A stretch of 64,000 nucleotides of DNA from Macrostomum hystrix (taxonomy: Eukaryota; Animalia; Platyhelminthes): NCBI GenBank assembly GCA_950097015.1, contig CATNEN010000034.1:6510001-6574000 (forward strand), given 5' to 3'. Below, one piece after another: positions 7,245 through 64,000 of this stretch (positions are counted from its first letter, which is position 1; the number at the start of each line of letters is the position of its first letter). The translations under genes and the position numbers were made by a program. The notes under the pieces are model-generated. The model was given only the letters and a program-made list of their open reading frames with translations. It was not told the DNA's origin and did no database searches.

Positions 7245-7329
7245 GTCCTGCTGCCGGCATGCACTGCGTGCTTACTCATAGTAGTATAGTAGGACATATA
7301 CTATGTCTATGTCTTGGTTTTCATAGTTG

Positions 7330-7580
7330 CACTACTAGAAGATGAAGAACAGGACACCTAGTTTCTTGGAAAAATTATTAAAAGGCAGATTTTCACGGAA
7401 AAATACATTAGCGAGATAGGGACTTTTCATTTTTAACTTTATTACTTTTTACTGGAAGCATATTTAATGCCGTTCGTTTAATATATCTTGAAAACCGTGT
7501 TGCATTCCGTGTTGCTTGAACGAATTTTAGAAAGTTTCATTCATAAATAACTGGTCTTGATTTTATTTTCGTTTATTTCA
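7330..7580 (+). mobile_element. Fragment of the non-autonomous DNA element also seen at 10685..11076
   Basis: Shares GTTTCTTGGAAAA...AGCGAGATAGG.ACTTTTCA and TTCGTTTATTT with 10695-10890; its first ~70 nt match the reverse complement of 11000-11068. Confidence 0.55.
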
Positions 7581-7582
7581 AT

Positions 7583-8195
7583 AGAGATCTCATAGTCGCT
7601 CATTAGAGATCTCATAGTCGCTCATTAGAGATCTCATAGTTACTCATTAGAGATCTCATAGTCACTCATTAGAGATCTCATAGTCACTCATTAGAGATAT
7701 TATAGTCACTCATTAGAGATCTTATAGTCACTCATTAGAGATCTCATAGTTACTCATTAGAGATCTCATAGTCGCTCAATAGAGATTTCATAGTTACTCA
7801 TTAGAGATCTCATAGTCGCTCAATAGAGATCTCATAGTTACTCAATAGAGATCTCATAGTCGCTCAATAGAGATTTCATAGTTACTCAATAGAGATCTCA
7901 TAGTCGCTCAATAGAGATTTCATAGTCACTCATTAGAGATCTCATAGTCGCTCAATAGAGATCTCATAGTTACTCATTAGAGATCTCATAGTCACTCATT
8001 AGAGATCTCATAGTCACTCATTAGAGATCTCATAGTCGCTCAATAGAGATCTCATAGTTACTCATTAGAGATCTCATAGTAACTCATTAGAGATCTCATA
8101 GTTACTCATAGAGATCTCATAGTAACTCATTAGAGATCTCATAGTCACTCATTAGAGACCTCATAGTCGCTCATTAGAGATCTCATAGTCGCTCA
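7583..8195. repeat. 22-bp minisatellite (TAGAGATCTCATAGTCACTCAT)
   Basis: Tandem array. Confidence 0.97.
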
Positions 8196-27010: not shown

Positions 27011-29966
27011 TGACTGAAGATCCCTGTTCGATGATGAGCCACTGCTTTGAGTGAGTCCTAGTAAGTTTTAAGCTGTCTGGCTTGTAATAGGAAAATAAAT
27101 TGTCGTTTTATTTACTAGCTTGGAAACAGGCTGTTTGCTTTTTAAAGCACTTTTAATTTTACTTGGCTAGTTTTCAAAGCTAGGTGTAATATTAGGTACT
27201 CTTATAACTCGATTTGTTCATAATCTGCGAAATCGACAAATTAGTTTTATAGAGAAAGCTAGTTTTGTTTCTTTTGTAAAAAGATGTTCTTTAACACAAG
27301 AAACGGAAACACGGGACTTGTAAAACTAGCTCGTATTTTACGCTATACTCTTCAATGCCATCAATTTAATAACTCTCGTTCTTTTCTATCCAAATACTTC
27401 TTCCCAGCTGTTACTCTCATTGCTGGCAGTTTTTTCTCCTTGAAAACAAAGCCGAACATCCGTCTTCATGTATGTCCTAATATACCGGTACAGGCTGCAT
27501 TCCATTATTTTCTTTCGCTGCCGTCTATAAGCTTCACAACTTTTATTGCGCCCCAATCTCCCAGTCTGGCTGTACAAAGCAAATTTTCTGCAATAATTTA
27601 CCTAATCGTTCCCGTTATATAATCAGCCTCTAACTATCTGTCATTATATTTTGTTTCAAAACATATATATTAGATGCGATTATTAACCGGACTTATCTTA
27701 CTGTTCTGAAAGTTTTCCATACAAACACAACATTAGTTTTCATTTTATCTTTATTGATTTGAGATTTATTGACATTTGAGATAGCTGCTTTATTTGCTGT
27801 AATTACTAAACAGTACAAAGTCTGTTCAGTCTACAAGCCAACACCCAGCTACGACCAAATGCTGGTAACCGATTTTACAGACGATTGAACTGAAGCAATT
27901 TCGGCGCTAAATGCGTGTCTAAAGCCTGATCTAGCATACACGTTTTTCCCTTCGACTGAGAACCGATCTCCTGTAGATAATTGGCGTGGTCGGGATAGGA
28001 GTTGTAGGTGGGAGATAAATCAAGACAGATAGGGGCCGCCAACATTCTTCAGCTTGGCCTAATGGTTGACACCGGCATCATTTCTTTGAAAGTGCCACAA
28101 TAATCATAGGCGAGTCTCAACTGCAGGGGCGGAAGCAAACGCAATCTCAACTGCTAGAGCGACAGTCTCAAGACAATTTTTTTCTGTAGCAGTTTTCCCA
28201 GCATTGGTGGGCGCCAGAACGATACTGATCAATTTTTTGCACGATGCGACGACTTGGGGCAGCCTGGGCAGCATCAGTTACAGCAAGCTAGCTCACTCTC
28301 TTATGTAGTTAATTTCATCACATCACTGCAGTCACTGTGAAATTTTTGGCGTCTTATCGGCCGGTCAGAGCTTGTTGAAAGACGCAATTTCTGGCATCCG
28401 TCCCTCCGCTTTTCATCGCCTGGAACCCTGAATAAATGCGTAATGCTAGAAATTTTAATACGTAAATATTAAGTTAAATGTAGTTAAATGACGGAATTGG
28501 CACCAATAAAGTCTAGGGGCGCCATGAATCACAGAGAGCCTAGTTTAAGCAGCCCCATAGGGACGAATATCTCTGTATCCCCCATTAGTTTTAGATGATC
28601 GCGCTTTGTTCATTATATTTCCCCGGTTTGAATATAATTGAACCAGGACATTAAAACGAACTCGGTATTATTTCAATATAATAAAAGCTCAAAGCGTTTT
28701 AGAAATCCATCTAACAGTTGAAGAAATAATATGCAAATAAAAATATACTTCAGTAATAAAGCTCTGAAAACGAATATTAAAAAGGAAAAGCGAAAATGAA
28801 GCAAAGCATGCACGGTGCAGTCCGAAATACAATATTCCAAAGATCCAATACAACATTAATTTTGAGTTATTTTTTTTATTAAAACAGTTTTCTTTATGTT
28901 CCTAAAAAATTGATGACACAAATAGCAAAAAATATGCACATATTTGGATTTTATTATTTATATATTATATTTAGTATTCATATATTTTAAAATGTTTATG
29001 TACTTTTATTTGAACTTTTATGTATTAGGCTGACTTAGTATTTTGAGAATAAAATAATTTCGATAAATAGTTTTTTGTGCCTTTAGCTTCAAGATAATAA
29101 TTTTATTTTAAATCCTTGTTTACTACTATTAGTATAAATTTAAATATTATATGTATAGGCCCTAAAGTATTATAAATATTACTTGAAATGTAAAATTTCA
29201 AGCTTATTGCTCAAGTTATATGTAGGTAGCCTAATTGAGCTATATTATATATTGTAGTTATATGGTACTTATCCTACACGTGAATATGGCCATTATTAAT
29301 TAAATTAACTATTTACTTATTAAATGCATAGTTATCACCAAAATGATATCTCTCATAGTGTATTTTGTATAGAATAATTTATTAGATGTAATTTTTGGCA
29401 TGTGTATGATGTATAATACAGTTTTAACAACATATATATTATATTCAATATTAAAAGAACAGCATCTTACATTTCTAATACAAAAAAGTTTCTTCTTCCT
29501 TCATTTTTCCATTTAGATGCTTGAACATTGCTGATATATCAGGATAGGGCCTAGCTATTGTCCATTTTTATCAGTGTATTTGTATAGCTATAGCTAGATT
29601 TTTGTGTAGATTTTTAAAAGCTCAATTAATACTTGTGTCATAAAATAATGGTGAAATACACCATGGGATATCTAGTTTTTTTAGCTGGGAGTATAGGACT
29701 AGGATAAGCTTATTGCTATATGCCTGTCAGTTATATGTTTTCCCAGAAAATACATTCTATTATGTATTGTTATATAATGGCATAATGTTTTTTATAATAA
29801 CAAGCTCTATTTATACCTTCCTATGTAAAACTGTATAACTCTCTGTGTTTTAAATTGCTCCAAAAATTGTGTGGTAATTTTGACTCTGTGCTTTATAAAA
29901 TACTTTATGATTATTTTCAATTAGAATAATATATAGCTATAAATATAAAAAACTGAAAGCTAGTAT

Positions 29967-45290: not shown

Positions 45291-48200
45291 TGTTGTGGCG
45301 GAATGTTTACATTTCTCTCCCTCTGTGCTAGCCTTTTCTTGCTCTCCCTAAAATGTGCGTGCAGCTCCTGTCCCGCATGTACATGTATGTACATGCCGGG
45401 GCTCTGGCCTACCCCGTCTATGTCCCTCAATTCATTGCATGGCCGGTGCCTCCAAATCGATGGTTATTTAATAAAGTGAAGGTCGGGCGTGTTTTTTAAC
45501 ACTCAAACAAAATGAGAATTGAGTTGACTCGCTTCAGTTCAACCACATTGGCTCTCGTGATCACGCATTCACTAAGCTGTGCGGACTGTTTGAGTTGCAT
45601 TCAATTGACTTTTTGTTCCATTTATTCTGTTTATCGTGTGTCGATATTTATTTTAATTTTTGCATACTTTTAGGCTTGCCAATCGATCAATAATTTCTTT
45701 TACAAAAGTTCTTTGAGCATGTTTTAAGACGAGCTGTTAGTCTTGATTCGGCTAGCGGAGACAAAGAAGGCTGAGCTGGAAAAGGTGGATGATAAGCAGC
45801 TTCTCAGGGAGTTTGTGACGGATGAGGGTGAACCGACAGACAAGCTGCAAGAAGAAACTGAGAAGTGCGACGAGTACATGCTCGAGCTCGAGAAAACAGT
45901 GGCAGGCCTAGAGCGAATTCGAGAGAAGAAATGGATGCCGACATCCTATTCTCCGATTTGGACTGGATCCAAGGTGCTAGCGGTGGCGGCTGATGGCAAG
46001 TCAGTGAATCTGCCGAAGCTGAGCCTGCCCATCTTTGATGGCAGTGACCCGACACAGTGGCCGAATTTCACCTCGCAGTTCAATTCAGCCATTCATCAGA
46101 ATATGAGTCTCCTAGAATATGAACACAACGTAGTTCAGCACTTCATAAAAAAGCTCGAGTCAGTCCGATGCGCGCCAGATTCAATAGCAGCTCTGGGATT
46201 TTTTGACGTAGTTAGATCAAGCTTTCGAGTTCTGCAGACTCTTGGTGTTAGCACACACAATTATGAAGTCCTTTCTAGTTCTGTCCGAGCTGTCTTGCGC
46301 TCCGTCCTAGCGAAAACTTACGGACGAGTGCCTACTCTAGAAAGTTTCTTAGATGCACTCGACGACGAGATTAAGCTCCGCGAGCGCTGCACACTCAGCG
46401 CAAGTAACCAAGGCGATCAGAACCGTCAGTCTCCGGAGATCCGCAGCTCTGTCTCAGGAGCCCATAGAGTCTCTCAAGGAAGAGAACGACCGTGCTTCTG
46501 CTGTCTGCGTCCTAATCACATGGCCTTTGAATGCCGATCGAAGAGAGCATGTCGCCACTGCGATAAAACACACCATTCAAGCATCTGCCTGACCGCGCAC
46601 TCAGGAATCGGACTGACCGCGAATTCCACTAAGAAGAAGGCTAAAACAGAGTCCATCGTCCAAGAGAAGGCAGCAACTTCTAACGGCAGTAGCACAACGA
46701 CAGTGGTCGCAACTTTCCAAAGAGGGCCAGTCCTTCATCGTCCACCCCAATCGTGCCGTGATCATGCCGACTGCCAAATGCATTATTATCAGCTCCGATG
46801 GACAATCCGAAATGCTTGGTCCGCGTGCTAGTCGACACTGCAAGCAATAAAACCTACATCAGGCAAGACTTAAGCCAGCGTTTGTGGCAACAGAAGTACT
46901 CCGCCGCAAGGAGAATCAGCTGGTCATTCATTCCGGAGCGGGCCCCGTGGATGGGGGGCTTTTATGAGCGTCTAGTAGGTGTCGTGAAAGCAGCGTTTAA
47001 GAAGACCATCGGCAAGGCTTTCCTCGCTCTGGACGAGTCATAGATCCTAAAATAATTCGTATTTATTTTAGTATTTCGTATTTTAGTTATTTTAGTATCT
47101 ATGGGACGAGTTGGCTACAGTTGTGTGCGAGATGGAAGCAGTTGTTAATTCTCGGCCGCTCGGTTTCGTCTCCTCAGAAGCACATGCCGAAGTGACCACC
47201 CCGAGCCACTTTCCTGGTGCTCCAGCGGCTGACCAGAGGACCAGACGCCACTCCGGAGATTCCGTCAGTTTTGCCGCTGCCAGAGGGTTGAAACGATTGC
47301 GACAGACGCTGAACAATTTCTGGCAAGAGTTCCTGAATGAGTACATCTTGACTCTTAGAGAGCGGTCAGTCAGAGAAGCGCGAACCTCCAATCATGAAGT
47401 TAAACTCGTAGACGTGCTGCTTCTTACTTCCGTCGGCCGGCGGCATCGCTGGTGCCTCTAAAGGTGTAGCTCATCGTGTGCCCCGTCTCTGGCCTCGTTT
47501 CGTCTTTTCTCTCTTTGTCCCGCTCCGATTCCGCTCATTCTTGCCTGTTTCCCAGTCTCCTGCTCATTACTCTACTCTCCGTCTATACTCATTTTGTTCA
47601 TTTGTTCTCAAACACATTAATTTCACTTCTCTAATCGTTAATGATTGTCCTCGGTGAATGGCTAATCGTTAATGATTGTCCTCGGTGAATGGCTAATCGT
47701 TAATCATTGTCCTCGGTGAATGGCTAATCGTTAATGATTGTCCTCGGTGAATGGCTAATCGTTAATGATTGTCCTCGGTGAATGGCTAATCGTTAATGAT
47801 TGTCCTCGGTGAATGGCTAATCGTTAATGATTGTCCTCGGTGAATGGCTAATCGTTAATGATTGTCCTCGGTGAATGGCTAATCGTTAATGATTGTCCTC
47901 GGTGAATGGCTAATCGTTAATCATTGTCCTCGGTGAATGGCTAATCGTTAATGATTGTCCTCGGTGAATGGCTAATCGTTAATGATTGTCCTCGGTGAAT
48001 GGCTAATCGTTAATGATTGTCCTCGGTGAATGGCTAAGCGTTAATTTTTCGCCAAATGGCCTGTTATTTTTTGTTTCACTTATTCACAATTTGCTGTTGC
48101 GGATTTTCATAAAACTAGCCTTTTCTTGCTCTCCCTACAATGTGCGTGCAGCTCCTGTGCCGTATGTACATCATGTATGTACATGCCAGAGCTCTGGCCT

Positions 48201-49918: not shown

Positions 49919-51804
49919 CATGACAGACTTTTAAATAGCCTCTACGACAGGCTGTTAAGTGAAATCTGGACTATTTTCATGGTCTTTATCTGTCTAAGCC
50001 TTTTGACAATTTTACCGGTTCTTTTAAAACTTTGGTTGAACTTTTTTTAAATTCAATTATTATATCCTGTATTTTCTTTTGGCGATGTTTTTGCATTTTA
50101 GAACTTTGCTGCTAATAGTTTCAATGATTTTTCTTGCTTCTCTACTAAAGTTTTTAAAGTCTGTCAATAAAACATTGCTTTCGAATGCTGAAAATTTTGA
50201 GGAGAGTAGACAAGTTTTTACTTTTTTTACTTTTTAGCCATTCGAACGTAAATTGGTCAGAACAACTTTGTTCATTGTCTAATGCTGGCTGTGTGTGCGA
50301 CAGCGACTCTACATGGTTTTCAAGGACATCGACTCTGGAGTCTAGCGCGACAGGAGCTGCGGACGGCAGGCGCTCGGGGCGCTGGGTGCTGAGTCATCGG
50401 CTGCTCCTGGAATGTGGCCGAGGCTCAGTGACCTGATGAATTTTTATTCTAATGGTATAAAATGCACACGGCACGCGGTTCTGACCATCGGGCAAAGCAG
50501 AATTTGGTCAAATGGCAGTATGAACCGCGTAGTGAGTTGATGCTTCCATCTGTAGCAGTCAAATTGTCAGATCATACCCCGTCAGCTGATAATTCGGCAG
50601 TTTAAATTAGGGTGAATCAGCTGTTAACCGTAAGACTAAAAAACTGGCTTTGAACGAACTTTATTCTTGATAAGATTTGAATGAGGTTTTTCCTATCCCA
50701 GTATTTAGCTTCACCAAGAGATCGAATTTATTAAACTTCCGCTGAAACAAATTCTACGGATTTCTCAGGCAGCAATTTTTTTCGGGATTTACGAATCAAC
50801 TGGGTTTCCACGGCAGCGATATTGAGGTTTCTTTGAGTCTATTTGTGATTTGAGGTTTGTGAGGTTGTGATAAAATGCGAGCCCAAAATATATATTGTCT
50901 ACATTCCGCCCTAAAGGGGTGATTGGCACTGTTAAGCATGATAACACGTTTGTCTCTCGTACAATGTACTTGTAGGTGGAGCCAACCCGATAGCACAGTG
51001 AGAGTATACGCTGTCTGACGCTGAGAATGTCTGGGTAGATTTTTTTACTTTAATTTGTGCTCGTTTCTTTTTCTTGATATAATGAATTCGTCTATTTTTT
51101 ATATAACAGATAAAACTTGTTGCAACGTACGAATGGTTTGTTATAACTTTAAATGTATAGTTTGCATTGTGCATTTATCTCTTTAATTAAAAAGAGTTCT
51201 GAGATTCAAAAGCATGGGTCAACTAGCGAACATGCGTGCCGTGCGTGCATGCACATGCTGACCTTACATAACACATTCGAAATCAACAAGGCTTATTTTT
51301 TTGTCAAATAATAGTTTGTTTCACAATAAATAAAATTTTCAAGTCCAGAGTTTTTCATCCTGCTTTAATTTATTCACAGCAATAAATTTATTGTGCACCT
51401 TAAATCTATGTTTCATTAAATGTAATTGGGGATTGGGCCTAGTTTCTTTTCTTTCTTTTACAGAATAAATGTCTGTCTTGAATTAAAACATTCTAAAATA
51501 ATGTTTTAATAGGCCAGAACTTAACTAAAATCTGCTGTCGCTATTATAAAACATAGCAGCCACAAAAGTTACTTCAAGCACTAACTTTACTATCTCATTC
51601 GAATTTTCTGTCAAAATTTCCACTGCTTCAGTCCTCACAAGTCAAGACTCCTCAGTCCAAGTCCTGATATATTGCAGAAAAATCTAATGCATATAATCCA
51701 AAACAAATACTACATCAGATTTTTCTCTAAGCTATTTATCAGTGGTTTAAACTCAATTATCTGATTAGGCCCTAAGAAGCTAAATCAATATCCAATCAAT
51801 CGAT

Positions 51805-52233
51805 CCTAGACACTTCGTCATCTTACAACTTCGTCATCCACTTTGAAGGTAGGGGCCTAGGACACTTCGTCATCCAGCCGATTGGCATGCTTTAAAGTTT
51901 GGTCAGTTTGTCATCTACTAATAACAAGCAATCAAGCTCGTCATCAATAAAGTGAGGGTGGGTGGTGGGGCAGAGGTTCACACTCTAAATTGTCAAAAGA
52001 TGTGTTAAAACTGATTTTATTATAAGAGGTGCCAAAGAGAGATAAGATAGGTGAAAGATAGGTGCTAAGACGATGTGAGGAGGGGTGGGGTAGTTCTGTT
52101 CTAACTTTGGAAACTTTTGTTTTATAGATGACAAAGTGTGCACAAGTCTAAGTCTCGTCATCCACCCTCTGAGATATTGGACAGACAGATTGTAATCTGG
52201 ATGATGAAGTTGTAAGATGAAAAAGTGTCCAGG
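51805..52233. mobile_element. MITE-like element with about 36-bp imperfect TIRs
   Basis: CCTAGACACTTCGTCATCTTACAACTTCGTCATCCA versus the reverse complement of 52198-52233; internal sub-repeats (TCGTCATC). Confidence 0.6.
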
Positions 52234-54422
52234 TACCAAATCAACTATGCTATTTAATAAAAAATACTTTGTGAGCATGTCTTGCTTTTTTATGCTACAT
52301 CATTGTTTATTTTATTTTGCAATGATTACATTTAATAAATGAAGTCTTAGCTATTATTAATAGCTATAATTGTATCTTATTGAATTAAAGTAGAAGGTAA
52401 TTTTGTTTATAAAAGTGGAATCAGAAACAAACATATTTCATATTTAAAATCTTTAAAAGTAATCCAATTATATAAATTGATTGTTTCTTATTTTGGGCAA
52501 CATATTTATTAGGGCTTGGTTGTTTATGAAATTTTGGTTGTGCATGAAAAAATAACTTTGTAATTGTGCATGACTGGTGTCTTGATTTTTTATTTTAATG
52601 GTTAACTAAATTAATTGCATATCAAGATATGGGACTCATAAATAAAACCATAGGCCTAATTAATTGTCATTTATATATGAATATGACATAATTAATAAAT
52701 CATACAATATGATCCAATCTTCATCCAAAATAGTCATAATATCTAAAGAATGATTACATAACCGCTGACTGCTGCAACTACAAATATACTGTATAATATA
52801 ATCTATAATTTCATTTTGACTGCTACTGCTTAGATTTATTTCTGTTTAAAAAAGTAGGTACTTCTCCTGTATAAAAGAAAACTTCCAATTCAAGCAAATA
52901 AAATATATAACATGTTATGGGACTGCATATACCTACTATAGTATTGTCATTGTTTGGTTCGTTTGGCTCTTAATTTAATGATGAATAAATTATATAATAT
53001 GATGACAAAAAGTTGAACTATAATTATTAAAATGTTGAATTATAATTATTAAAAAGTTAAATCAAATGATTCACAATGCCAATTGCTTGAAAAAAATTTA
53101 TGCATGAATAATTTGAATAATTTCAATTTCAAGAATTTGAGTTAAGCAATTTTTCTTTTGACTCTGCTATACAACATCTTTTTGTGCTCGCATCAAATGT
53201 TCTTCTTCACTCTTCATCCAAACAATAAATAAACAACAGTTGTGCATTGCTGCCCTTTTGTAAGTTGTAAGGCAAGCAGAAAGATGAGCAGCTTTCATAA
53301 ACAAAAGAAGATGGCTGCTTAGATTTCTGTATCTTTCTTTAGATTATTTGACAATATTTGATAAGTTTATCTCTTCAAGCATCTGAAATTGAAACTGAGA
53401 GGATTTGTACTGTTAGATGTGCTATTATACTAATAAAACAAAATTCTAGATTATAGTACTTGCATTTGGATTCCCAAAATTTCCATTAAAAAGTATTAAT
53501 GGGTCATGAAAAAAACAAAAGGGAGTAAAAGATCTCAATGTAATTTTCACATTGTAAAAAAATCAGGATTGCGATTCCTATGGTTGTGAAATCACAAATT
53601 GCATGTGTTGCACCTGTCTTATTTTCAGCTAAGTCATCTAATCTATGGAATATTTACTCTTTATTGAAAATGTTACATTTTTTCCTTTATTTTTCATAGT
53701 TTTTTTAATCTTACTTTGACCCCATTGTATTAGAAGCTGAACTGTTCTTGTGTAAAACTGTAGGTTATGTAGGTCAGCCATTTATTTGAATTTTTAAGTT
53801 CATAACAAAGTGCTATTTCTGTTGTGTCTAATATATTGCTGCCCATTATATAACAGTTCTATTTTACTTCTAGTTTTTTTACTCTTCATAGACCAAATAC
53901 ATTTCTGTGAGATAGGCTCATTAATGAGAAGGGGAATTCAAGTCCTGATCTAGCCTTCAGATGTACTACAAAATGCTGCATCTGAGTTGTCCGCTGCAAA
54001 TCTGGTCTGATGGGGGCAACTATAATAGTTTATTGTAAATTAAATTAGCTTTACCATTTTATCTACATATAGCTGTTGTAGCATATAACTGGAATGGCAA
54101 TCAATGCAGCGTCATTTTTATGCTATATAAAGATTTTATCTTTCTTACTTAATAGAGATATTGATTTCCATTATTCATTAGAATTCAATAATACAAAAAC
54201 TAATGTACACCATGTTGATCCTTCAGACAGTTATAGCAATAAATCAAATACATAGCAAATAAAAATGTTCATTTATGCATGTGTCGTTTTACAATATTTT
54301 AAAACTCATATATTGTATTGTTTTTTATGTATGCATATGTTATTTCTGCATAGTATTATGTCTCAAGATGCTATCATATTCATAGTTCCAGCATTCCTAT
54401 TGTAGCATTGATTTATATATAG

Positions 54423-55321
54423 CAGGGGTCGGCAAACTTATTAGCTGGCGGGCCAAAGAGAGAATCTAAAAGACGACAGCGGGCCGCTTTGATTATAGAA
54501 ATATTATATAAGGGCGAGATAAGACACGGGAGAGATGAGACACGGGAGAGCTGAGACACGAGAGAGATGAGACACGGGAGAGCTGAGACACGGGAGAGAT
54601 GAGACACGGGAGAGGTGAGACACGGGAGAGATGAGACACGGGAGAGATGAGACACGGGAGAGATGAGACACGGGAGAGATGAGACACGGGAGAGATGAGA
54701 CACGGGAGAGATGAGACACGGGAGAGATGAGACACGGGAGAGATGAGACACGGGAGAGATGAGACACGGGAGAGGTGAGACTCGGGAGAGATGAGATACG
54801 GGAGAGCTGAGACACGGGAGAGCTGAGACACGAGAGAGATGAGACACGGGAGAGCTGAGACACGGGAGAGCTGAGACACGGGAGAGATGAGACACGGGAG
54901 AGATGAGACACGGGAGAGATGAGATACGGGAGAGATGAGACACGGGAGAGATGGGACACGGGAGAGATGAGACACGGGAGAGATGAGACACGGGAGAGGT
55001 GAGACTCGGGAGAGATGAGATACGGGAGAGCTGAGACACGGGAGAGCTGAGACACGAGAGAGATGAGACACGGGAGAGCTGAGACACGGGAGAGATGAGA
55101 CACGGGAGAGATGAGATACGGGAGAGATGAGACACGGGAGAGATGAGATACGGGAGAGGTGAGACACGGGAGAGGTGAGACTCGGGAGAGATGAGACACG
55201 GGAGAGATGAGACACGGGAGAGATGAGACAGGATACTATAGGTGTTGGAAAGGGCAACGGGCCGGATTTGGGAGCTTCGAGGGCCGCATCTGGCCCGCGG
55301 GCCGGAGTTTGCCGACCCCTG
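54423..55321. mobile_element. Non-autonomous hAT (Charlie-like) element with internal minisatellite
   Basis: Perfect 16-bp TIR CAGGGGTCGGCAAACT and perfect 8-bp TSD ATATATAG (54415-54422, 55322-55329). Confidence 0.93.
54520..55230. repeat. 16-bp minisatellite (GAGACACGGGAGAGAT) inside the hAT element
   Basis: Tandem array; source of three LSRVSSLPCLISPVSH repeat ORFs. Confidence 0.97.
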
Positions 55322-55437
55322 ATATATAGGGACGTCTTTATTCCCAATTCTTTCGCCTGTAACTAAAATGAATATAACTAACAACAATATCCACCCTTCT
55401 GTTGCAGGTGGCAGAGCTAGCCTTGTTGGCGCAAGCA

Positions 55438-56988
55438 ATGCAGGTCATCAGCGATTATGAGCAGCGACGGTTATCAAGAATGGCTGAGAATGACAGGTTA
55501 ATTGACGAGCTATTTGGTACTTGTGTAACTGCCAAACTGCCACAGCCGAAGCGAGCTGCAAATGGTAGTGGAAAAGCTGACAATGTCTCTAGACAAAAGC
55601 AGCCTAGGGCCTGTACTATGCAGAAGAAGCGCCAGAGAAGTGACAGCGACAGCGACCCAGATTACCAACCTGCCGTCAAGACTAAAAAGTCTGCTGCAGG
55701 TTCTGTCAAAAAGACTGCTGCTGCTGCTGCTGCTGCTGCACCTGGGAGCGTACCGCGCAGAGCACCGCCTCGTCACAGCAAAACTGCCTGTGTTTATACG
55801 GAAAGCGAAGAGCGGCGATCCCTCTACTGTTACGACTGTGCCAACGAGGTGTTCCGCGACTGCTGCCAGCAGCACCAGCGCTGGATTGCCAACCGAATAC
55901 CTGATGGATTGGGCACTGTGGAAAACTTTGCCGACCTCACCTTGCCAGAGGGAATGCGTATCTGCCGATCCGCTGTGAGCAGATTCGCTGGCAGGGGAGT
56001 ATGGACTGAGGCTGCGATCCCTCGCGGCTCGATTTTCGGACCCTACCTGGGCAAGCGGATTTCCGACAAGGCAGCTGCCGAGGCCTCGTCCTACGCCTGG
56101 GAGATCCGATGCGAGGCCGGAACGCCACAGCGCAAAGAGTGGGTGGATGCCGCTGACAAGCGATATTCCAATTGGATGCGCTACGTGAACTGTAGCCGTA
56201 ATCTGTGCGAGCAGAACATGATTGCCTTCCAATGGGACAATGATGTGTACTACATTGCCATTCGCAACATCAGTCCCGGCCACGAGCTGCTTGTTTACTA
56301 TGGCGACGAAATGGCAAAGTTATACAACATAGTGGCCGAAGAGGGCGACAGCGTCAGCGATCGACCGCTGTTCGAGGAGACGGACGTTTTACAGACTGGC
56401 GGCGATCGGTCGTGCGGCTTTTGCGACAAAACTTTCAAGAGCAAATCAAGCAAGATGTGGCACGTCAGGACTGTTCACCTGTTGGAGAGGCACCACGTGT
56501 GCTCTCAGTGCGATGCTCGATTTCGAAGTGAAAGTGGTCTGGATGTTCACATGCGCACTCACACTGGCGAGCGACCGTTTGCCTGCAGTCTGTGTGAGAA
56601 GGCCTTCACTAAGAGCGGCAATCTCAAGACACACATGCGCACTCACACTGGCGAGCGACCGTTTGCCTGCAGTCTGTGTGAGAAGGCCTTCACTGAGAGC
56701 GGCAGTCTCAAGACACACATGCGCACTCACACTGGCGAGCGACCGTTTGCCTGCAGTCTGTGTGAGAAGGCCTTCACTGAGAGCGGCAGTCTCAAGACAC
56801 ACATGCGCACTCACACTGGCGAGCGACCGTTTGCCTGCAGTCTGTGTGAGAAGGCCTTCACTAAGAGCGGCAATCTCAAGACACACATGCGCACTCACAC
56901 TGGCGAGCGACCGTTTGCCTGCAGTCTGTGTGAGAAGGCCTTCACTGAGAGCGGCCATCTCAAGAGACACATGCGCACTCAGCACTAA
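55438..56988 (+). CDS. PRDM9-like: PRDM9-like histone methyltransferase: KRAB-like helix, SSXRD-like motif, Zn knuckle, PR/SET, 7 C2H2 fingers (last 5 an 84-bp minisatellite)
   Basis: LYCYDC..CCQQH knuckle and PR/SET (GRGVW, FGPYLG, NWMRYVNC, EQNMIAFQ, YYIAIR, ELLVYYG), followed by TGERPF-linked fingers. Single uninterrupted ORF with an acceptor-like TTGCAG at 55402-55407, so an upstream exon is possible. Orthology to PRDM9 is not proven. Confidence 0.88.
   Translation: MQVISDYEQRRLSRMAENDRLIDELFGTCVTAKLPQPKRAANGSGKADNVSRQKQPRACTMQKKRQRSDSDSDPDYQPAVKTKKSAAGSVKKTAAAAAAAAPGSVPRRAPPRHSKTACVYTESEERRSLYCYDCANEVFRDCCQQHQRWIANRIPDGLGTVENFADLTLPEGMRICRSAVSRFAGRGVWTEAAIPRGSIFGPYLGKRISDKAAAEASSYAWEIRCEAGTPQRKEWVDAADKRYSNWMRYVNCSRNLCEQNMIAFQWDNDVYYIAIRNISPGHELLVYYGDEMAKLYNIVAEEGDSVSDRPLFEETDVLQTGGDRSCGFCDKTFKSKSSKMWHVRTVHLLERHHVCSQCDARFRSESGLDVHMRTHTGERPFACSLCEKAFTKSGNLKTHMRTHTGERPFACSLCEKAFTESGSLKTHMRTHTGERPFACSLCEKAFTESGSLKTHMRTHTGERPFACSLCEKAFTKSGNLKTHMRTHTGERPFACSLCEKAFTESGHLKRHMRTQH
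56548..56982 (+). repeat. 84-bp coding minisatellite (zinc-finger array)
   Basis: Five units identical except at three codons. Confidence 0.98.
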
Positions 56989-58099
56989 AGTGAGCACTGT
57001 GGAGTCAGGTTAATTTATTGCAGTGTTTTTATGGGTTTTCCAAACTCCTGTTGGGGTTCGCAGGTTTAGTCGATTGGTCCAGGCGACCTCCCTAGCGGTG
57101 CATTTCTTAACGGGCCGATTGCTGGTAGATCCTAGTTTCGAATCTTTGTTACAAATTTTATTTATTTATTTATTTTAATTAGAGTTTATAATTAAAAATA
57201 GTATTTCTAGCATTTCTAGTTCATAAAAATCGTAAAAAAAGTTTCTGCACTGCAAAAGCAGCCTCAGCCGATATGTTTAGAAAATTGAATTGTTTGTGGT
57301 ACGGCCTCGAAGTTTTCGCAGCTTCTACTTGTCGTAGTGGTCAAGCAAATTAAAAAAATTATTCTCTTATTTACTTTTTTACTTCTTACGCTTTTGTACT
57401 AAATGCTCTATCAATACTTAGTATTTTTGCCTTGTTTACAGATATTTTATCTGGCTAGTAGTATGCGCAGCAAATATTTTTCGCATCGTTCCAGTTTTTC
57501 AGTTTCGTCTTTGTCGTTTCACAACAGTTTTAAAAGCCAATGAAGAGTGGTCACTGTCGTAGTATTATTTTTTAGAATGTTTTCTTTTTTTTAAAGGCCA
57601 ATGCAAATGTTCATTGTTTGTTATTTATGTCTTTTACACTGTGTCGTTCTATATCGTTGTAGATTTCCATTTTTGGAAATTGTCTTTTTCTACTAGTATC
57701 AATAAAAGCATTTCGTCCTTTCCTAGCGTGTTTTATAATTTTTCCACAAGTTTTTGTTTTTTTTCTGGTTTTTCCTGGTTTTTGCTCTGCTTTTAGTTCT
57801 GCGTAATTGGAAACTTGTCAATACAATAGTATGCATTTTTCCTTAATATCGTTTTATTATTTGGCATTTTACTACGTTTTTGCCAAATACACTTAGCTTT
57901 TTCGTTGGCAATTTATCTCCTTTTTTGTTTAAATCGTTTCGTTGGTTTAGGTCTTTGTTACATTTTTAATTAAAATATTTACTGTCTTATTTGCTTTCGA
58001 TGCCTAGTTTTCTATCATAACTTTGAACAGATTATCGATTAACGAACAGATTAACGAATTGTAATATATGACCAATACATAATACGAGTAAATGTAAAA

Positions 58100-58570
58100 A
58101 CTATGACCAATGCAGAATCAGTGGAAGAACTATGACCAATGCAGAATCAGTGGAAGAACTATGACCAATGCAGAATCAGTGGAAGAACTATGACCAATGC
58201 AGAATCAGTGGAAGAACTATGACAAATGCAGAATCAGTGGAAGAACTATGACAAATGCAGAATCAGTGGAAGAACTATGACCAATGCAGAATCAGTGGAA
58301 GAACTATGACCAATGCAGAATCAGTGGAAGAACTATGACCAATGCAGAATCAGTGGAAGAACTATGACCAATGCAGAATCAGTGGAAGAACTATGACCGA
58401 TGCAGAATCTGTGGAAGAACTATGACCGATGCAGAATCTGTGGAAGAACTATGACCAATGCAGAATCAGTGGAAGAACTATGACCAATGCAGAATCTGTG
58501 GAAGAACTATGACCAATGCAGAATCAGTGGAAGAACTATGACCAATGCAGAATCAGTGGAAGAACAATGA
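58100..58570. repeat. 29-bp minisatellite (ATGACCAATGCAGAATCAGTGGAAGAACT)
   Basis: Tandem array. Confidence 0.96.
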
Positions 58571-59241
58571 TCAATATAAAAGAGTAGCATAGGAAAAGCA
58601 GAGAAGCAGAGTTTGTGGAATGCCGGTCCTGTAATTCTTTTGTGTGGGGTTAGAGAAAACGAATGGAAGCTATAACCACGCCCTAACTGCACATAGGATT
58701 GTGCGAACATTGTTGAAATCTATTGTACAATAATTCTAGTTCAGCAGCTGTTGCGAGCGCAGTAGCTACAGCTAAAGTGTACAATTTGTAATTCCTACAA
58801 GGCGTAAGCTTCTACCTGAGCTGTGGAGAGAGGGGGAGGGTGTCGTACGTTTCTTTCCCCCGTTCCGTCTCCCTCTCCCCTCCCTTCTTAGCATATTAGT
58901 TTGAACTTTTCTGTTCCTCCTGCTCTGTGAGTACCCGTGAGAACTACCAGCATCTTCTTATTTCTTAAACAGACAGCAAATAGATTGTTTCCATTCTAAA
59001 TTCCTCTCTTTAATATCTATATTCATTTCTCGACGCAGAGCACACGGCCCCACAAACCCCATTGTTCTGCAATTGAGTACCCCTTGTTGGTTTCTCAGCC
59101 CGTACCTACTCAAGTCAAAGAATGGCGCATTTAATAAAATGTCAGAGCAAGCTATTATTCTGTGCTACGCCTAGCTGAGTCTAATAGGGTTCGCCTAAGG
59201 CTTCTTGCACTAATTTAGCCGGTCTGCTCAGTAGCATCACT

Positions 59242-62200
59242 ATGCAGTCGCAGTCTAACTCGTATCGAAATCTCAGCTACAGCTCCCTAGTTAGAGTTGA
59301 CGACATGCAGCAGCAGCAGCAGCAGTCGCTTGACAGCCTGTTCCAACCTGAGAACATTGTGGTCAAACAGCAGATGCTCAGCAGAGAAGAGGTGCTCATT
59401 GGTGTCGGCCGTATCCTGGACTGGGTGCACGGACCGGGCACCAAACTGCTGGACTCCCAGCGCGAGCTGCCGACTAACTTCACGGAGGCCGAGCAAATTC
59501 GAAAAAATCACGAACAATTCGAGTTTAAGTGTATGGTAAGACGGATTGCTACGCCTTTATTTTTCATCCAATCAGAAACCTAATGCGCCACCCAGAAGCC
59601 AATTCCATCCAATCAGAGACTGACTCAGTCACTCCGAAGCCATGCAATCCCATCCAATCAGAGACCGACTCAGTCAGTCAGAAGCCAGTTCCATCCAATC
59701 AGAGACTGACTCAGTCACTCCGAGGCTAATTCCATCCAATCAGAGACTGACTCAGTCACTCCGAAGCCATGCAATCCCATCCAATCAGAGACTGACTCAG
59801 TCACTCCGAAGCCAATTCCATGAAACAGTGAGAGTTACCAAAGCGCCACTAAAACCCTCAGCAAGCGCTCGCCAATTACGCCAGCCTTCGCGATGTTCGC
59901 ACAAACGACAACGAGCTGGCCGAGCGCCTAGAAAAGCTCGAGATCACCATCCAGGACTTCCTCCGCCGGCTTCAATCACGTCGTCAGGCTGTGGTCTCGT
60001 TGTACACCTTCTTTCGGCTGCGTCGCGACCTCGACGGTTATTTCCAGGAAATCGCCGACCTGCTAGTCTGGTCACAGAAGCGGCAGCACGAGCACGATGG
60101 GCAGCGCATTGAAGACGCGGAGCACTACCTGCGCCAGGTGGAGAAGCTGCTCCGCTTCGGTGAGAGCCTCTATCAGCAGCTGTGTGCTGAGGCTGAGCGA
60201 ATCCGATTAGTCGTCACCTCGCAGGAGATACTCGGTATCGTTGCGGCGCGGCTCGGCGAAGCCAAGCCCCAGCTAGCCAAGCAGTTGGAGACGCTTAAAA
60301 TCCGCCTGCTGGAGACTCGAAGGCGGCTGCAACTGTTGGTGTACGAGAGGGACACCAACCAGACCATAGCCTGGCTTGAAGACATCATCAGTGCAGTGCT
60401 GGACACTTATCTGGGCTATTGTATTGGTAAGACGCCGATGGAGTCGCAGCAGATATTGCTGCAGCATCGCACCCTGCAGGCCAAGTCCCAGGTAGGCGTT
60501 TTTCGGATTGGGTTAAGGGTGAGATGGGTGGAGGGTTAGGAGCAGGGAGTGAGTTGATTGTTGGACGGAAGGTCCGGGGCAGGGAGTGAGGTGGTTGGTG
60601 GACGGAAGGTCCGGGGCAGGGAGTGAGGTGGTTGGTGGACGGAAGGTCCGGGGCAGGAAGTGAGGTGGTTGGTGGACGGAAGGTCCGGGGCAGGGAGTGA
60701 GGTGGTTGGTGGACGGAAGGTCTGCGGCAGGGAGTGAGGTGGTTGGTGGACGGAAGGTCGTGCGTAGGGAGTGAGGTCGCTGGTGGATTGTTGGTTAGCG
60801 GCAGGGCAGATGGCCACTCGATGGGTCGAGCTGTTTGAGGGATTGAAAAATTCGGGGAAGAGAAGAAGGGCTTTTTCTCAAAATCAATGAAAACGATCGT
60901 AAAAAAACTATTAGGAAACCTACGACTGCGGCCTGGAGCTGATATCCGCTCTGACAAAGATCTACAGGTCTCAGGGCGCCAGCACAGAGAACTGCTCTGT
61001 GATGCGCACCGACCTCGAGATGAACTGGAGACGCCTGAACGACATTCTGATTGAGATGGGCGATCGATATGCCACCGCGGACGCCTTCTATGAAAACGTC
61101 GATCTGGTGAGTAGTGTCTTTTGTTTCGTTTCGCTAGTGCAGACCATGATCAATTAGATAACATTAAACATTAAACTGTGGGATAACGAGGACATTGCAA
61201 GGCAATAAAAAATAACAATTCAGTAAACAAACCCGATTCAGATATTGAAACTGAGAGTAACGATTTTCATAATTTCTAGCGAAAATTTTTGGCACGAAAG
61301 AGGGCCGGCAACTAGTAATACCTAACGTACCCAACGTATTTTTAATTACCCAACGTTCTCTAACGTTCATAACGTACTCTAAAGTTCCCAACGTACTCTA
61401 AAGTTCCCAACGTACTCATGTGTACCCAACGTACTCTAAAGTTCCCAACGTAATCATGTGTACCCAACGTACTCTAAAGTTCCCAACGTACTCATGTGTA
61501 CCCAACGTACTCTAAAGTTCCTAACGTACTCATGTGTACCCAACGTACTCATGTGTACCCAACGTACTCATGTGTACCCAACGTACTCATGTGTACCCAA
61601 CGTACTCATGTGTACCCAACGTACTCATGTGTACCCAACGTACTCATGTGTACCCAACGTACTCATGTGTACCCAACGTACTCATGTGTACCCAACGTAC
61701 TCATGTGTACCCAACGTACTCATGTGTACCCAACGTACTCATGTGTACCCAACGTACTTTTTTCTATCCATCGTACTCTATCTCGCATTTGTACACAATG
61801 TCTCCTATACGTTCTCTAAAATTCGACGAAACACGACAGAACCTGGAGCGCATCGAGCGACTCATCCTTCTTATCTGTCGCGACCTGGACACCGGAATGT
61901 CGCTGGACGACGTACGCAAGACCTACGCCGCAGAGCGGGACGAAATTGTCAAAGCGTACGAGAGCACCAAGCGAATTGGTGTCGGTCTGATGGAGCGAAT
62001 CCAGTTACCTGTTGCCAACCTGTGAGGCACTACTATTAGTAGAAATAAAGTTTTTTCTCGATTTCTGCTCGCATTAGACTATTTCGAATGCAATTCCCTT
62101 CCAGACCCGAAACTGTCGATCAGAAGATGATCGACCAGGTGCAGGACATAATCAAGGTCAAGCTGTTCACGTTGTGGTTGAAAATACGTGAACTATACTA

Positions 62201-63823
62201 CTACCTTGGCCAGGTGATTGAGATTTCAGAGGTCACTGAGCGATGGCAAGTTATCAGAGTCACAATTGACAAGGTTTGCGGCATTTTTCGCTGTTTCTTT
62301 AATCAGATTACATTCTTTGTGAAGTGCAATCAGATTTCAATCAACTGCAATCAGATTTCAATCAACTGCAATCAGATTTCAATCAACTGCAATCAGATTC
62401 CAATCAACTGCAATCAGATTTCAATCAACTGCAATCAGATTTCAATCAACTGCAATCAGATTTCAATCAACTGCAATCAGATTTCAATCAACTGCAATCA
62501 GATTTCAATCAACTGCAATCAGATTTCAATCAACTGCAATCAGATTTCAATCAACTGCAATCAGATTTCAATCAACTGCAATCAGATTTCAATCAACTGC
62601 AATCAGATTTCAATCAACTGCAATCAGATTCCAATCAACTGCAATCAGATTTCAATCAACTGCAATCAGATTCCAATCAACTGCAATCAGATTTCAATCA
62701 ACTGCAATCAGATTCCAATCAACTGCAATCAGATTCCAATCAACTGCAATCAGATTCCAATCAACTGCAATCAGATTCTAATCAACTGCAATCAGATTCC
62801 AATCAACTGCAATCAGATTTCATTTAGCCCATTACATGTAACCTGTGAAGTAGCCTTTCGTCAGACTCGCATCCCATTCTCCCAATCAGTTCTACGACCG
62901 GCTGCTTCACTGGGAGGCTCGCTGGCAGGAGGCCCGCAGCCTGCCGTTCACCCTGGCCGAAGCTCAAGCGCTGCTCGATGAGCATCGTCGTGCCGCGGAG
63001 GAGATCGGCAGCTCGTGGGAGCAGCTGCTGGCGGACCTGGCCGCAATGGCCCTCGATCCACAAGTTGGCTCGCTGGCTGAGCAGGTGCGTGGCTGCTAAA
63101 AGTACTGAAATTTCTCAATTTGAATTGGTGCCCAAAGTCAGCAGTTAAGGTTTTGTTAATCTGCCTCTAGAAAATTGAATGCCTGAGGTTGTCGGCTTTC
63201 ATTGTTATTTATTTTGGATTGATTAAATTGTCATTTTTTCAAATTGAATTAATATGGATTAACCATGGAAGTTTGTACAGACCAAAGTTAAGTTGTACTT
63301 GTCACGATTGTCTTCAACAAGAATCGTTGAATATCTCGACGATGCTGACATCGGACGGCTTTGAAAGTTAGTTCATCGTAAACGGCGGACAATTTTGATT
63401 CAGATAGCGGACTTTCACGAAAATCGGTCATTCTGTTTGGGAGCAATCGCGAAATAGGCAGTGGGTTTTTGAAATACCCCCCTTTCACCAGGTGGAAAAT
63501 AGCGTGGTATTTCTACTGTTTAGATTCAACTTGGCCCTACTAACAGTAGGATCTAGGCAAATGATCATCCTTTTTTTATAAATTGACCCAAGGCTCGCTC
63601 GGATGCGCAGCGCCGCATGGAGGAATGGCAGCGGCGTTGGGACCGGCGCCAGGCCGAGCTGGACATGCGCCTCCGGCTGCTCTTGCGCCTGCGAGACCTG
63701 TCCAACGAAGTCGAGGACAACCGCAGTCGGCTGTCCGAGCTGAAGACTGAGCGCACGGTGACCAAGGTCGGGCCGGTGTCCGACACGGCTGCCGATGTCG
63801 CCACTCTGCAACGGGGCGTGGCG
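59242..63823 (+). CDS. Spectrin-repeat protein (SESTD1/Trio-type repeats), 5' part, continuing beyond the window; exons 59242-59535, 59862-60491, 60915-61105, ~61840-62021, 62105-62273, 62890-63084, 63593-63823
   Basis: Spectrin-like helices (ILDWVHGPGTKLL..HEQF, TIAWLEDII, LLHWEARW, EEWQRRWDRR). GT/AG junctions are phase-compatible; the acceptor of exon 4 is uncertain. Confidence 0.8.
59560..59820. repeat. About 44-bp intronic minisatellite (CCATCCAATCAGAGACTGACTCAGTCACTCCGAAGCC...)
   Basis: Spectrin gene intron 1. Confidence 0.9.
60545..60790. repeat. 37-bp intronic minisatellite (GGACGGAAGGTCCGGGGCAGGGAGTGAGGTGGTTGGT)
   Basis: Spectrin gene intron 2. Confidence 0.93.
61365..61760. repeat. 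19-bp intronic minisatellite (CCCAACGTACTCATGTGTA)
   Basis: Spectrin gene intron 3. Confidence 0.95.
62325..62822. repeat. 21-bp intronic minisatellite (TGCAATCAGATTTCAATCAAC)
   Basis: Spectrin gene intron 5. Confidence 0.96.
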
Positions 63824-63829
63824 GTGAGA

Positions 63830-64000
63830 ATGCAACTAGTTTTCTAACAGCTGCAACTGGATTTCTTACAGCTGCAACTGTTTTTGTCACAGCTGCAACT
63901 GTTTTTGTCACAGCTGCAACTGAATTTCTCACAGCTGCAACTAGATTTCTCACAGCTGCAACTGGATTTCTCACAGCTGCAACTAGATTTCTCACAGCTG
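63830..64000. repeat. 21-bp intronic minisatellite (CAGCTGCAACTAGATTTCTCA)
   Basis: Begins just after the donor at 63824 and runs off the window. Confidence 0.93.

Follow-up and report, generated by a model that had tools for sequence, protein, structure and literature searches.

Does any flatworm keep a gene of the Prdm7/9 subfamily, and could its product position recombination sites as vertebrate PRDM9 does? The question is raised by a locus of Macrostomum hystrix within a 64,000-nucleotide stretch of contig CATNEN010000034.1 (assembly GCA_950097015.1, positions 6,510,001 to 6,574,000, forward strand; hereafter the window, in whose coordinates all M. hystrix positions are given). A survey of PRDM genes did not find Prdm7/9 in Schmidtea or Schistosoma, the two flatworms sampled, and inferred its loss in the phylum (PMC4760075). 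Flatworms lie outside the coverage of both the study of Oliver et al. 2009 (PMC2779102) and a 2026 cnidarian study (bioRxiv 10.64898/2026.09.07.749791), and the latter notes that little is known of what PRDM9 does outside vertebrates. In the literature searched, we found no description of a flatworm PRDM9 array, and the link between PRDM9 and Macrostomum amounted to a passing mention. On the plus strand of the window, which carries all features of the gene described below, a reading frame open over 55402-56988 contains a single coding exon at 55408-56988 (526 codons plus stop, without an intron). We are highly confident that this exon belongs to a Prdm7/9-subfamily gene with a concertedly evolving zinc-finger array that is variable at its DNA-contact positions.

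The C-terminal part of the exon is an 84-bp coding minisatellite (56548-56986) with five C2H2 fingers at 56578-56985. Tandem Repeats Finder reported a period of 84, 5.2 copies, 97% matches and no indels over this stretch, and a 51-nt core of the unit occurred five times without a mismatch at exact 84-bp spacing, with zero occurrences in shuffled sequence. Four nucleotides vary among the five units (offsets 63, 72, 73 and 82, which are 56611, 56620, 56621 and 56630 in the first unit), and all of the variable codons change the amino acid: AAG/GAG (K/E), AAT/AGT/CAT (N/S/H) and ACA/AGA (T/R). These codons are helix positions -1, +3 and +6 of the finger FACSLCEKAFT-x-SG-x-LK-x-H. A preliminary description of this DNA had claimed that the units vary at these three positions alone, and this was borne out, as were the helices that it listed, which the translation gives as TKSGNLKT, TESGSLKT, TESGSLKT, TKSGNLKT and TESGHLKR. 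The contact quartets (positions -1, +2, +3 and +6) are, in order, KGNT, EGST, EGST, KGNT and EGHR.

To have four variable sites all fall inside those 9 of 84 nucleotides by chance has a probability of 6.5e-5, or of 0.0067 when the pool is limited to the 18.3 synonymous sites per unit and the 7.3 replacement sites in contact codons. That synonymous differences are absent, as had also been claimed, agrees with the sequence but is not significant alone, with four variable sites and about 78% of sites being replacement sites. The contact-residue share of amino-acid diversity is 1.0 among the five 84-nt units and falls to 0.69 with the altered end of the last finger taken into account and to 0.41 when the finger ZF2 is included. 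The repeat described earlier as five 84-bp fingers is thus real, but the last finger ends in HMRTQH-stop (H-x4-H spacing) and is hence incomplete as a unit, and two further fingers precede the array. One is a lone post-SET C2H2 finger (ZF1, 56413-56478), which aligns with the post-SET finger of mouse PRDM9 and of the tick and mussel proteins. The other is a diverged anchor finger (ZF2, 56500-56562) with 57% nucleotide identity to the array fingers and 68% to ZF2 of Macrostomum lignano; its last 15 nt (56548-56562) and the following linker (to 56577) already lie inside the repeat.

The closest protein cluster was from M. lignano, and its longer member PAA57651.1 / A0A267E7U2 (P0185, 528 aa against 526 residues in M. 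hystrix) was traced to contig L001, where the gene occupies one exon (6001-7587) with the domain order of M. hystrix. Like its counterpart, it is intronless, has a truncated N-terminus and carries five array fingers (L001 7162-7584), encoded by an 84-bp repeat of 4.6 copies at 97%. Its framework, FSCSYCGKAFS...HMRIHTGEKP, differs from the M. hystrix FACSLCEKAFT...HMRTHTGERP, and it has different contact residues, the quartets being QGHN, RDST, RDST, QGST and VSHY. Among the four complete units of M. lignano, 5 nt differ, all of them in codons -1, +2, +3 and +6 (P = 2.6e-5), and the contact share of diversity is 1.0 among ZF3-ZF6. The combination of concerted evolution and contact-restricted variation that had been claimed for M. 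hystrix was therefore found independently in a second array.

Comparison of the two species revealed how differently the parts of the gene have evolved. Synonymous sites are saturated between the species (proportion of synonymous differences, pS, about 0.72), while the PR/SET domain retains 82% protein identity with a proportion of nonsynonymous differences (pN) of 0.115, therefore indicating purifying selection. The array fingers, once the contact codons are set aside, show 100% nucleotide identity within each species and 72% between species. Because old duplicates left without homogenisation would show as much difference inside one species as the rest of the gene shows between the two, the arrays must be undergoing homogenisation in both lineages, and these sequence comparisons show concerted evolution in the strict sense. 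The contact codons diverge fastest between the species and are the sole differences among units within a species: 8 of 20 contact residues are identical between species versus 80 of 116 framework residues (P = 0.02), and none of the five fingers agrees at helix position -1.

A further comparison was possible within M. lignano, between P0185 and an older model with a collapsed array (P0001, A0A1I8ILI9), which automatic annotation had already named PRDM9. Between them there are 2 differences in the 360 residues that precede ZF2 and 8 in the 63 residues of ZF2 and the last finger (P = 6e-6), the latter including helix positions -1, +3 and +6; the pair may be homeologues rather than alleles. In an exact-protein look-up P0185 was recorded, and the M. 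hystrix gene product and P0001 were without a record.

The identity of the units might instead be an assembly artefact, produced by a collapsed, expanded or consensus-polished repeat. Short-read contigs break inside the M. hystrix array without spanning it, and the array of P0001 is an example of collapse. Against this, the array in the independent M. lignano assembly is built on the same 84-bp plan, with frameworks that are identical and variation at contacts alone, the DNA and RNA-type contigs within the M. hystrix array contain no differing letters, and the reading frame is intact across all units. We regard an artefact as very improbable.

To which family the gene belongs was addressed with its PR/SET domain (55987-56328; Pfam PRDM2_PR 1.2e-34, SET 7e-13), a predicted methyltransferase; the Pfam matches in the protein as a whole are the PR domain, SET and seven C2H2 fingers. 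The tyrosine codons at 56044, 56251 and 56299 align with Y276, Y341 and Y357 of mouse PRDM9, so that the Pfam matches and the mouse alignment confirm the earlier statement that the domain keeps the three catalytic tyrosines of PRDM9. Upstream of the domain lies a pre-SET zinc knuckle (LYCYDCANEVFRDCCQQH, 55822-55875), which was aligned with the PRDM9 knuckle of PDB chains 4c1q and 6nm4. Its cysteines C141, C144 and C152 are invariant in the family alignment A3, and the knuckle cysteines are invariant in alignment A4 too.

In phmmer comparisons with the PDB, the PR/SET region scored 113 bits against PRDM9 (1.2e-31), 81 against PRDM11, 68 against PRDM12 and 65 against PRDM2. Since Prdm11 originated within vertebrates (PMC4760075), the next subfamily that is relevant to a flatworm lies about 45 bits below PRDM9. 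As a second test, we used a structure model (mean predicted local distance difference test score, pLDDT, 78.7; PR/SET core mostly 87-96, with one 10-residue block at 76) in a fold search of Swiss-Prot. Ranks 1-4 were mouse, rat and human PRDM9 and human PRDM7, at 33-36% identity, followed by Caenorhabditis elegans SET-17 at rank 5, PRDM11 at rank 6 and then PRDM10. A word-indexed protein search returned three relatives only, and an exhaustive HMMER search of 1.84 billion representatives was used instead. It gave 2140 hits, and all named top hits were PRDM9-like or PRDM7-like proteins, from Priapulus, urchins, starfish, a tick, a horseshoe crab, Nematostella, Sycon, fishes and a shark, along with mouse PRDM9; nematode relatives of SET-17 (cluster P0055) were also among the hits. 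The PRDM9-like identity proposed in the preliminary description is thus upheld, as PRDM9 and PRDM7 stand above every other PRDM in the PDB scores, in the fold ranking and among the named HMMER hits, a placement that consists of score and fold rankings in place of a rooted phylogeny.

The layout of the protein is also that of Prdm7/9, with a knuckle before the PR/SET domain, one C2H2 finger after it and a terminal tandem C2H2 array. The KRAB-like half-motif, the acidic motif (both described below), the knuckle and the post-SET finger align contiguously with the tick, urchin, mussel and mouse proteins. Vertebrate PRDM9 (mouse Q96EQ9, our P0173; human Q9NQV7) and human PRDM7 share with the flatworm protein the knuckle, the PR/SET tyrosines and the single post-SET finger, and vertebrate PRDM9 likewise has a C-terminal C2H2 array that is encoded by an 84-bp minisatellite and varies at -1, +3 and +6. 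The flatworm protein differs from vertebrate PRDM9 in that its PR/SET domain is only 33-36% identical, its KRAB domain is half present, its SSXRD is barely recognisable and its array has 5 fingers. Vertebrate and cnidarian PRDM9 genes are also multi-exon genes, whereas the Macrostomum gene is a single exon.

The pattern in the fingers is itself already known, lophotrochozoans included, because concertedly evolving Prdm9 fingers with selection at -1, +3 and +6 were reported from Nematostella, Lottia and Capitella (Oliver et al. 2009, PMC2779102) and concerted finger evolution was reported from 28 cnidarians in 2026 (bioRxiv 10.64898/2026.09.07.749791). The flatworm gene resembles these invertebrate Prdm9 genes in its diversity at contact positions, its three tyrosines and a finger number within the reported 3-17, but the full-length invertebrate genes carry KRAB and SSXRD domains that are detectable with hidden Markov models (HMMs). 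The cnidarian scheme would class the flatworm gene as truncated (kXSZ or SZ), yet its contact share is 1.0 among units.

What remains of the N-terminal domains was therefore compared with custom family profiles, which were built because Pfam KRAB and SSXRD also miss clear invertebrate KRAB-like domains, such as that of the urchin; neither Pfam model gave a hit to the M. hystrix protein. The KRAB-like remnant (MQVISDYEQRRLSRMAENDRLIDELFG, 55438-55518) corresponds to the second half of the ancestral KRAB-A motif only. In hhalign, MQVISDYEQRRLSRMAENDRLI aligned over columns 15-36 of a 44-column profile (22/44, P = 4.8e-4) made from 25 PRDM9-family segments, 12 of which match Pfam KRAB, and BLASTP against the tick PRDM9-like protein P0018 gave an unbroken alignment from the KRAB-like motif through the end of SET. 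An acidic motif, SDSDSDPDYQP (55639-55671), matches the (S/D)SD-EEW-P stretch that follows KRAB in the family and is seen in 25 of its members; the M. lignano copy is identical to that of M. hystrix. Directly before the zinc knuckle lies an SSXRD-like remnant (VPRRAPPRHSKTACVYTESEE, 55750-55812), in the same position as the SSXRD of 43 family members. Both the KRAB-like motif and the SSXRD-like segment are conserved in M. lignano. By vertebrate and cnidarian criteria the gene is therefore a truncated form with remnants, and not a complete KRAB-SSXRD-SET-ZnF orthologue.

These N-terminal results bear on a different explanation, in which the gene is a partial PRDM9 orthologue that does not direct recombination. 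Comparable with the KRAB-less PRDM9 copies of teleosts or with C. elegans SET-17, such a protein would regulate chromatin and transcription in the germline or in development at largely stable targets, and gene conversion would homogenise its array simply as a by-product of the tandem repetition. The truncated KRAB and degenerate SSXRD of both Macrostomum species are what this explanation expects. In vertebrates only complete orthologues direct recombination, and partial forms act like knock-outs with respect to hotspot control (PMC5519329). The nematode SET-17 proteins lie in the same similarity neighbourhood; SET-17 has a PRDM9-like PR/SET domain (34% identity) but no zinc-finger array, and it promotes gene expression in spermatocytes rather than choosing sites of recombination (PMC5942854). 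The five-finger layout and 8 of 20 contact residues are, moreover, shared between the two Macrostomum species despite saturated synonymous divergence.

The fingers, however, do not behave as stable targets predict. Contacts should then be the best conserved residues, whereas here all variation within the arrays lies in them, and between species they are conserved the least (40% identity versus 69% for the framework, with 0 of 5 at position -1). The two near-identical M. lignano sequences differ mostly in the finger helices. Truncated vertebrate and cnidarian homologues have a lower contact share, 0.16-0.78 (10.64898/2026.09.07.749791), against 1.0 among units here. On balance, we consider a partial orthologue without a part in recombination possible but rather unlikely.

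The variable contacts could also mean that the protein is an arms-race factor, whose fingers track fast-evolving transposons or satellites and whose PR/SET domain marks them. Contact-confined variation, which is present here, is also typical of young genes of the type that encodes KRAB zinc-finger proteins (KZFPs). The locus is rich in repeats, with a 16-bp satellite and an extremely abundant repeat directly upstream, and satellite binding was proposed for Prdm9 by Oliver et al. (PMC2779102). KZFPs resemble the Macrostomum protein in having tandem C2H2 arrays with diversifying contact residues, and their KRAB is descended from an ancestral PRDM9/SSX-type motif (PMC8835667). They have, however, a canonical KRAB-A/B and no PR/SET domain, which is the reverse of the Macrostomum gene, where Pfam found no canonical KRAB-A/B and where every domain fits the PRDM9 architecture. 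Its catalytic tyrosines are those of an H3K4/H3K36 methyltransferase. The H3K4/H3K36 methylation made by PRDM9 is an activating and not a silencing mark. The coding sequence also has a DNA depth (about 80-85) not far from the 61 measured for the 3' flank, and the gene therefore looks single-copy and not like a member of an expanding family. The preliminary description had offered a KRAB-ZNF-like factor targeting transposable elements as its alternative; lacking a canonical KRAB and having an intact PR/SET domain with the PRDM9 catalytic tyrosines, the gene does not favour it, and we consider an arms-race factor improbable.

Whether the gene is expressed was addressed with contigs aligned to 55240-57400. 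The gene was present in four runs from the RNA search, and RNA-type contigs of two of these (X3 and X5), which are of low depth, cover it from 55407 to about 57111, with nil depth past about 57138; contigs of the DNA run X1, by contrast, extend past the gene on both sides. A splice acceptor (55400-55407, a pyrimidine tract and tgttgcag, with its AG at 55406-55407) precedes the exon, which is in phase 0. RNA-type record 11 of X3 matches 55407-55627 and continues upstream of 55407 with 23 unmatched letters, while DNA contig record 6 of X1 is continuous across 55370-55705, that is, through the acceptor. Because the RNA-type contig departs from the genome at 55407 and the DNA contig does not, the acceptor is used in transcripts; the gene is transcribed and its acceptor is spliced. 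No joints occur inside the gene in the RNA-type contigs, which therefore indicates a gene without introns, and their coverage defines a 3' untranslated region at 56989-57111 (record 16 of X3 spans 56926-57111). Macrostomum mRNAs are often trans-spliced, and the spliced leader probably ends in ATG (PMC10468722); an ATG of this kind would be in frame with 55408, and the M. hystrix gene is probably trans-spliced to a leader that supplies its AUG.

In M. lignano an acceptor lies directly before the ATG, with an in-frame stop codon just upstream. Since the gene is intronless in both species, an origin as a retrocopy, or nesting within an intron, may be considered; the M. lignano gene is contained within a second called gene, whose span covers the whole 13.6-kb locus, and no synteny of the window with L001 was found in the 6-kb flanks. 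In the M. lignano germline expression tables available in text form, the gene has no entry.

Two observations concern the samples. At position 55584 the RNA-type run X5 has G for T, turning an N codon (AAT) into a K codon (AAG) in the linker that follows the KRAB-like motif; because of this difference the X5 sample is not identical in genotype to the reference. A run labelled as another organism ('organism B', X9) contains a 260-nt contig identical to 56103-56362 in the SET domain but no other part of the gene, for which contamination, mislabelling or a very close relative are possible reasons.

Taken together, these results are best explained if the exon is the only coding exon of a Macrostomum Prdm7/9-subfamily, PRDM9-like gene with the function proposed here, an explanation that we hold to be probable as a whole. 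Homogenisation of the minisatellite in each species, which the comparisons above show, presumably proceeds through unequal exchange or gene conversion, and we hypothesize that replacement changes at -1, +2, +3 and +6 would be favoured and would re-aim the protein. The finger array would bind a DNA motif of 15-20 bp, and the PR/SET domain would trimethylate H3K4, and perhaps also H3K36, on nearby nucleosomes. The likeliest setting would be the germline, where these marks could designate sites of meiotic double-strand breaks as those of vertebrate PRDM9 do. The parts of this proposal differ in strength. That the gene product positions recombination sites is a tentative suggestion, held at less than even confidence. 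Somewhat more doubtful still is a fully working flatworm PRDM9-type system, in which a homogenised, fast-retargeting array guides H3K4/H3K36 methylation and meiotic breaks with a KRAB stump and a degenerate SSXRD. The 'rapidly retargeting' and hotspot parts of the preliminary description may hold, and are what we infer from the sequences rather than observe.

Several results weigh against the recombination proposal or limit how far the data carry it. The first group concerns the N-terminus and the restriction of hotspot control to complete vertebrate orthologues cited above. A complete KRAB was not found, the M. hystrix protein having a half-motif only and no Pfam hit, and the M. lignano open reading frame starts only 7 residues before the KRAB-like half-motif. 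A six-frame profile search of the window, with 55 kb upstream of the gene, gave no credible upstream KRAB exon; 28722-28796 was considered as such an exon (E = 0.096) and rejected, being AT-rich, of low complexity and 27 kb away with other genes in between. With the SSXRD profile, hhalign gave a weak match of 9 columns in which CVYTESEE alone was aligned (P = 0.016). In a PR/SET tree of 131 PRDM9-like domains without an outgroup, the flatworm pair falls among the invertebrates on a long stem (0.74).

The second group concerns the array. The selection tests draw on little data, as there are only three types of unit and four sites that vary. In the contigs of one DNA and two RNA-type runs the array showed no variant letters, a check made on assembler contigs, which drop rare variants, and on samples that may represent one line. 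The arrays of both species also consist of five fingers whose unit types follow an x-y-y-x-z order; in each array the inner pair carries S at +3 and T at +6, and the last finger carries H at +3. The shared order proves little because, given a 2+2+1 composition, its chance is about one in three. If the layout was inherited, however, it may be older than the synonymous saturation, and turnover would then be far slower than in mammals.

The DNA around the gene contains repeats and other genes. The repeat at 55240-55327, directly upstream of the gene and adjoining the satellite, has a summed contig depth of about 6e5 in X1 versus about 85 over the gene; many contigs depart from it at 55318-55327, the repeat is also present, with a few differences, in the 'organism B' run, and it resembles the terminus of a mobile element of very high copy number. 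Between the acceptor and the intergenic DNA upstream is the 16-bp satellite (GGGAGAGATGAGACAC, 54512-55230; 44.9 copies, 93% matches), and a 29-bp tandem repeat (58099-58575; 16.4 copies, 97% matches) lies about 1 kb past the 3' end of the gene. Further downstream, at 59242-63900, lies a plus-strand gene whose exons look like helical repeats and which contains several minisatellites, coding or intronic, such as those around 61458-61800 and 62300-62830. At 46798-47461, between an upstream gene cluster and an AT-rich intergenic stretch, are fragments of open reading frames that resemble the integrase region of a retroelement. An Rfam search of 50000-64000 found nothing.

The loci of M. hystrix and M. 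lignano show that Prdm7/9 has been retained in an early-branching genus of flatworms, and the gene has the two sequence hallmarks that are linked with hotspot control, namely the catalytic tyrosines and a contact-variable minisatellite that evolves in concert. What is new here is the phylum, and the finding that a textbook example of a contact-variable minisatellite occurs together with a truncated KRAB and a degenerate SSXRD. In vertebrates and cnidarians such arrays as a rule accompany a complete KRAB and SSXRD. The Macrostomum gene breaks this rule and can therefore serve as a natural experiment on which domains are needed. That question is directly testable because Macrostomum is open to RNA interference (RNAi), transgenesis, inbred lines and comparison of selfing with outcrossing. 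If the system works as proposed, PRDM9 hotspot designation would exist in a protostome, and the full vertebrate domain set would not be strictly required. Models of hotspot erosion (the Red Queen) would then gain a transparent, transgenic, RNAi-amenable genus of hermaphrodites with both selfing and outcrossing species.

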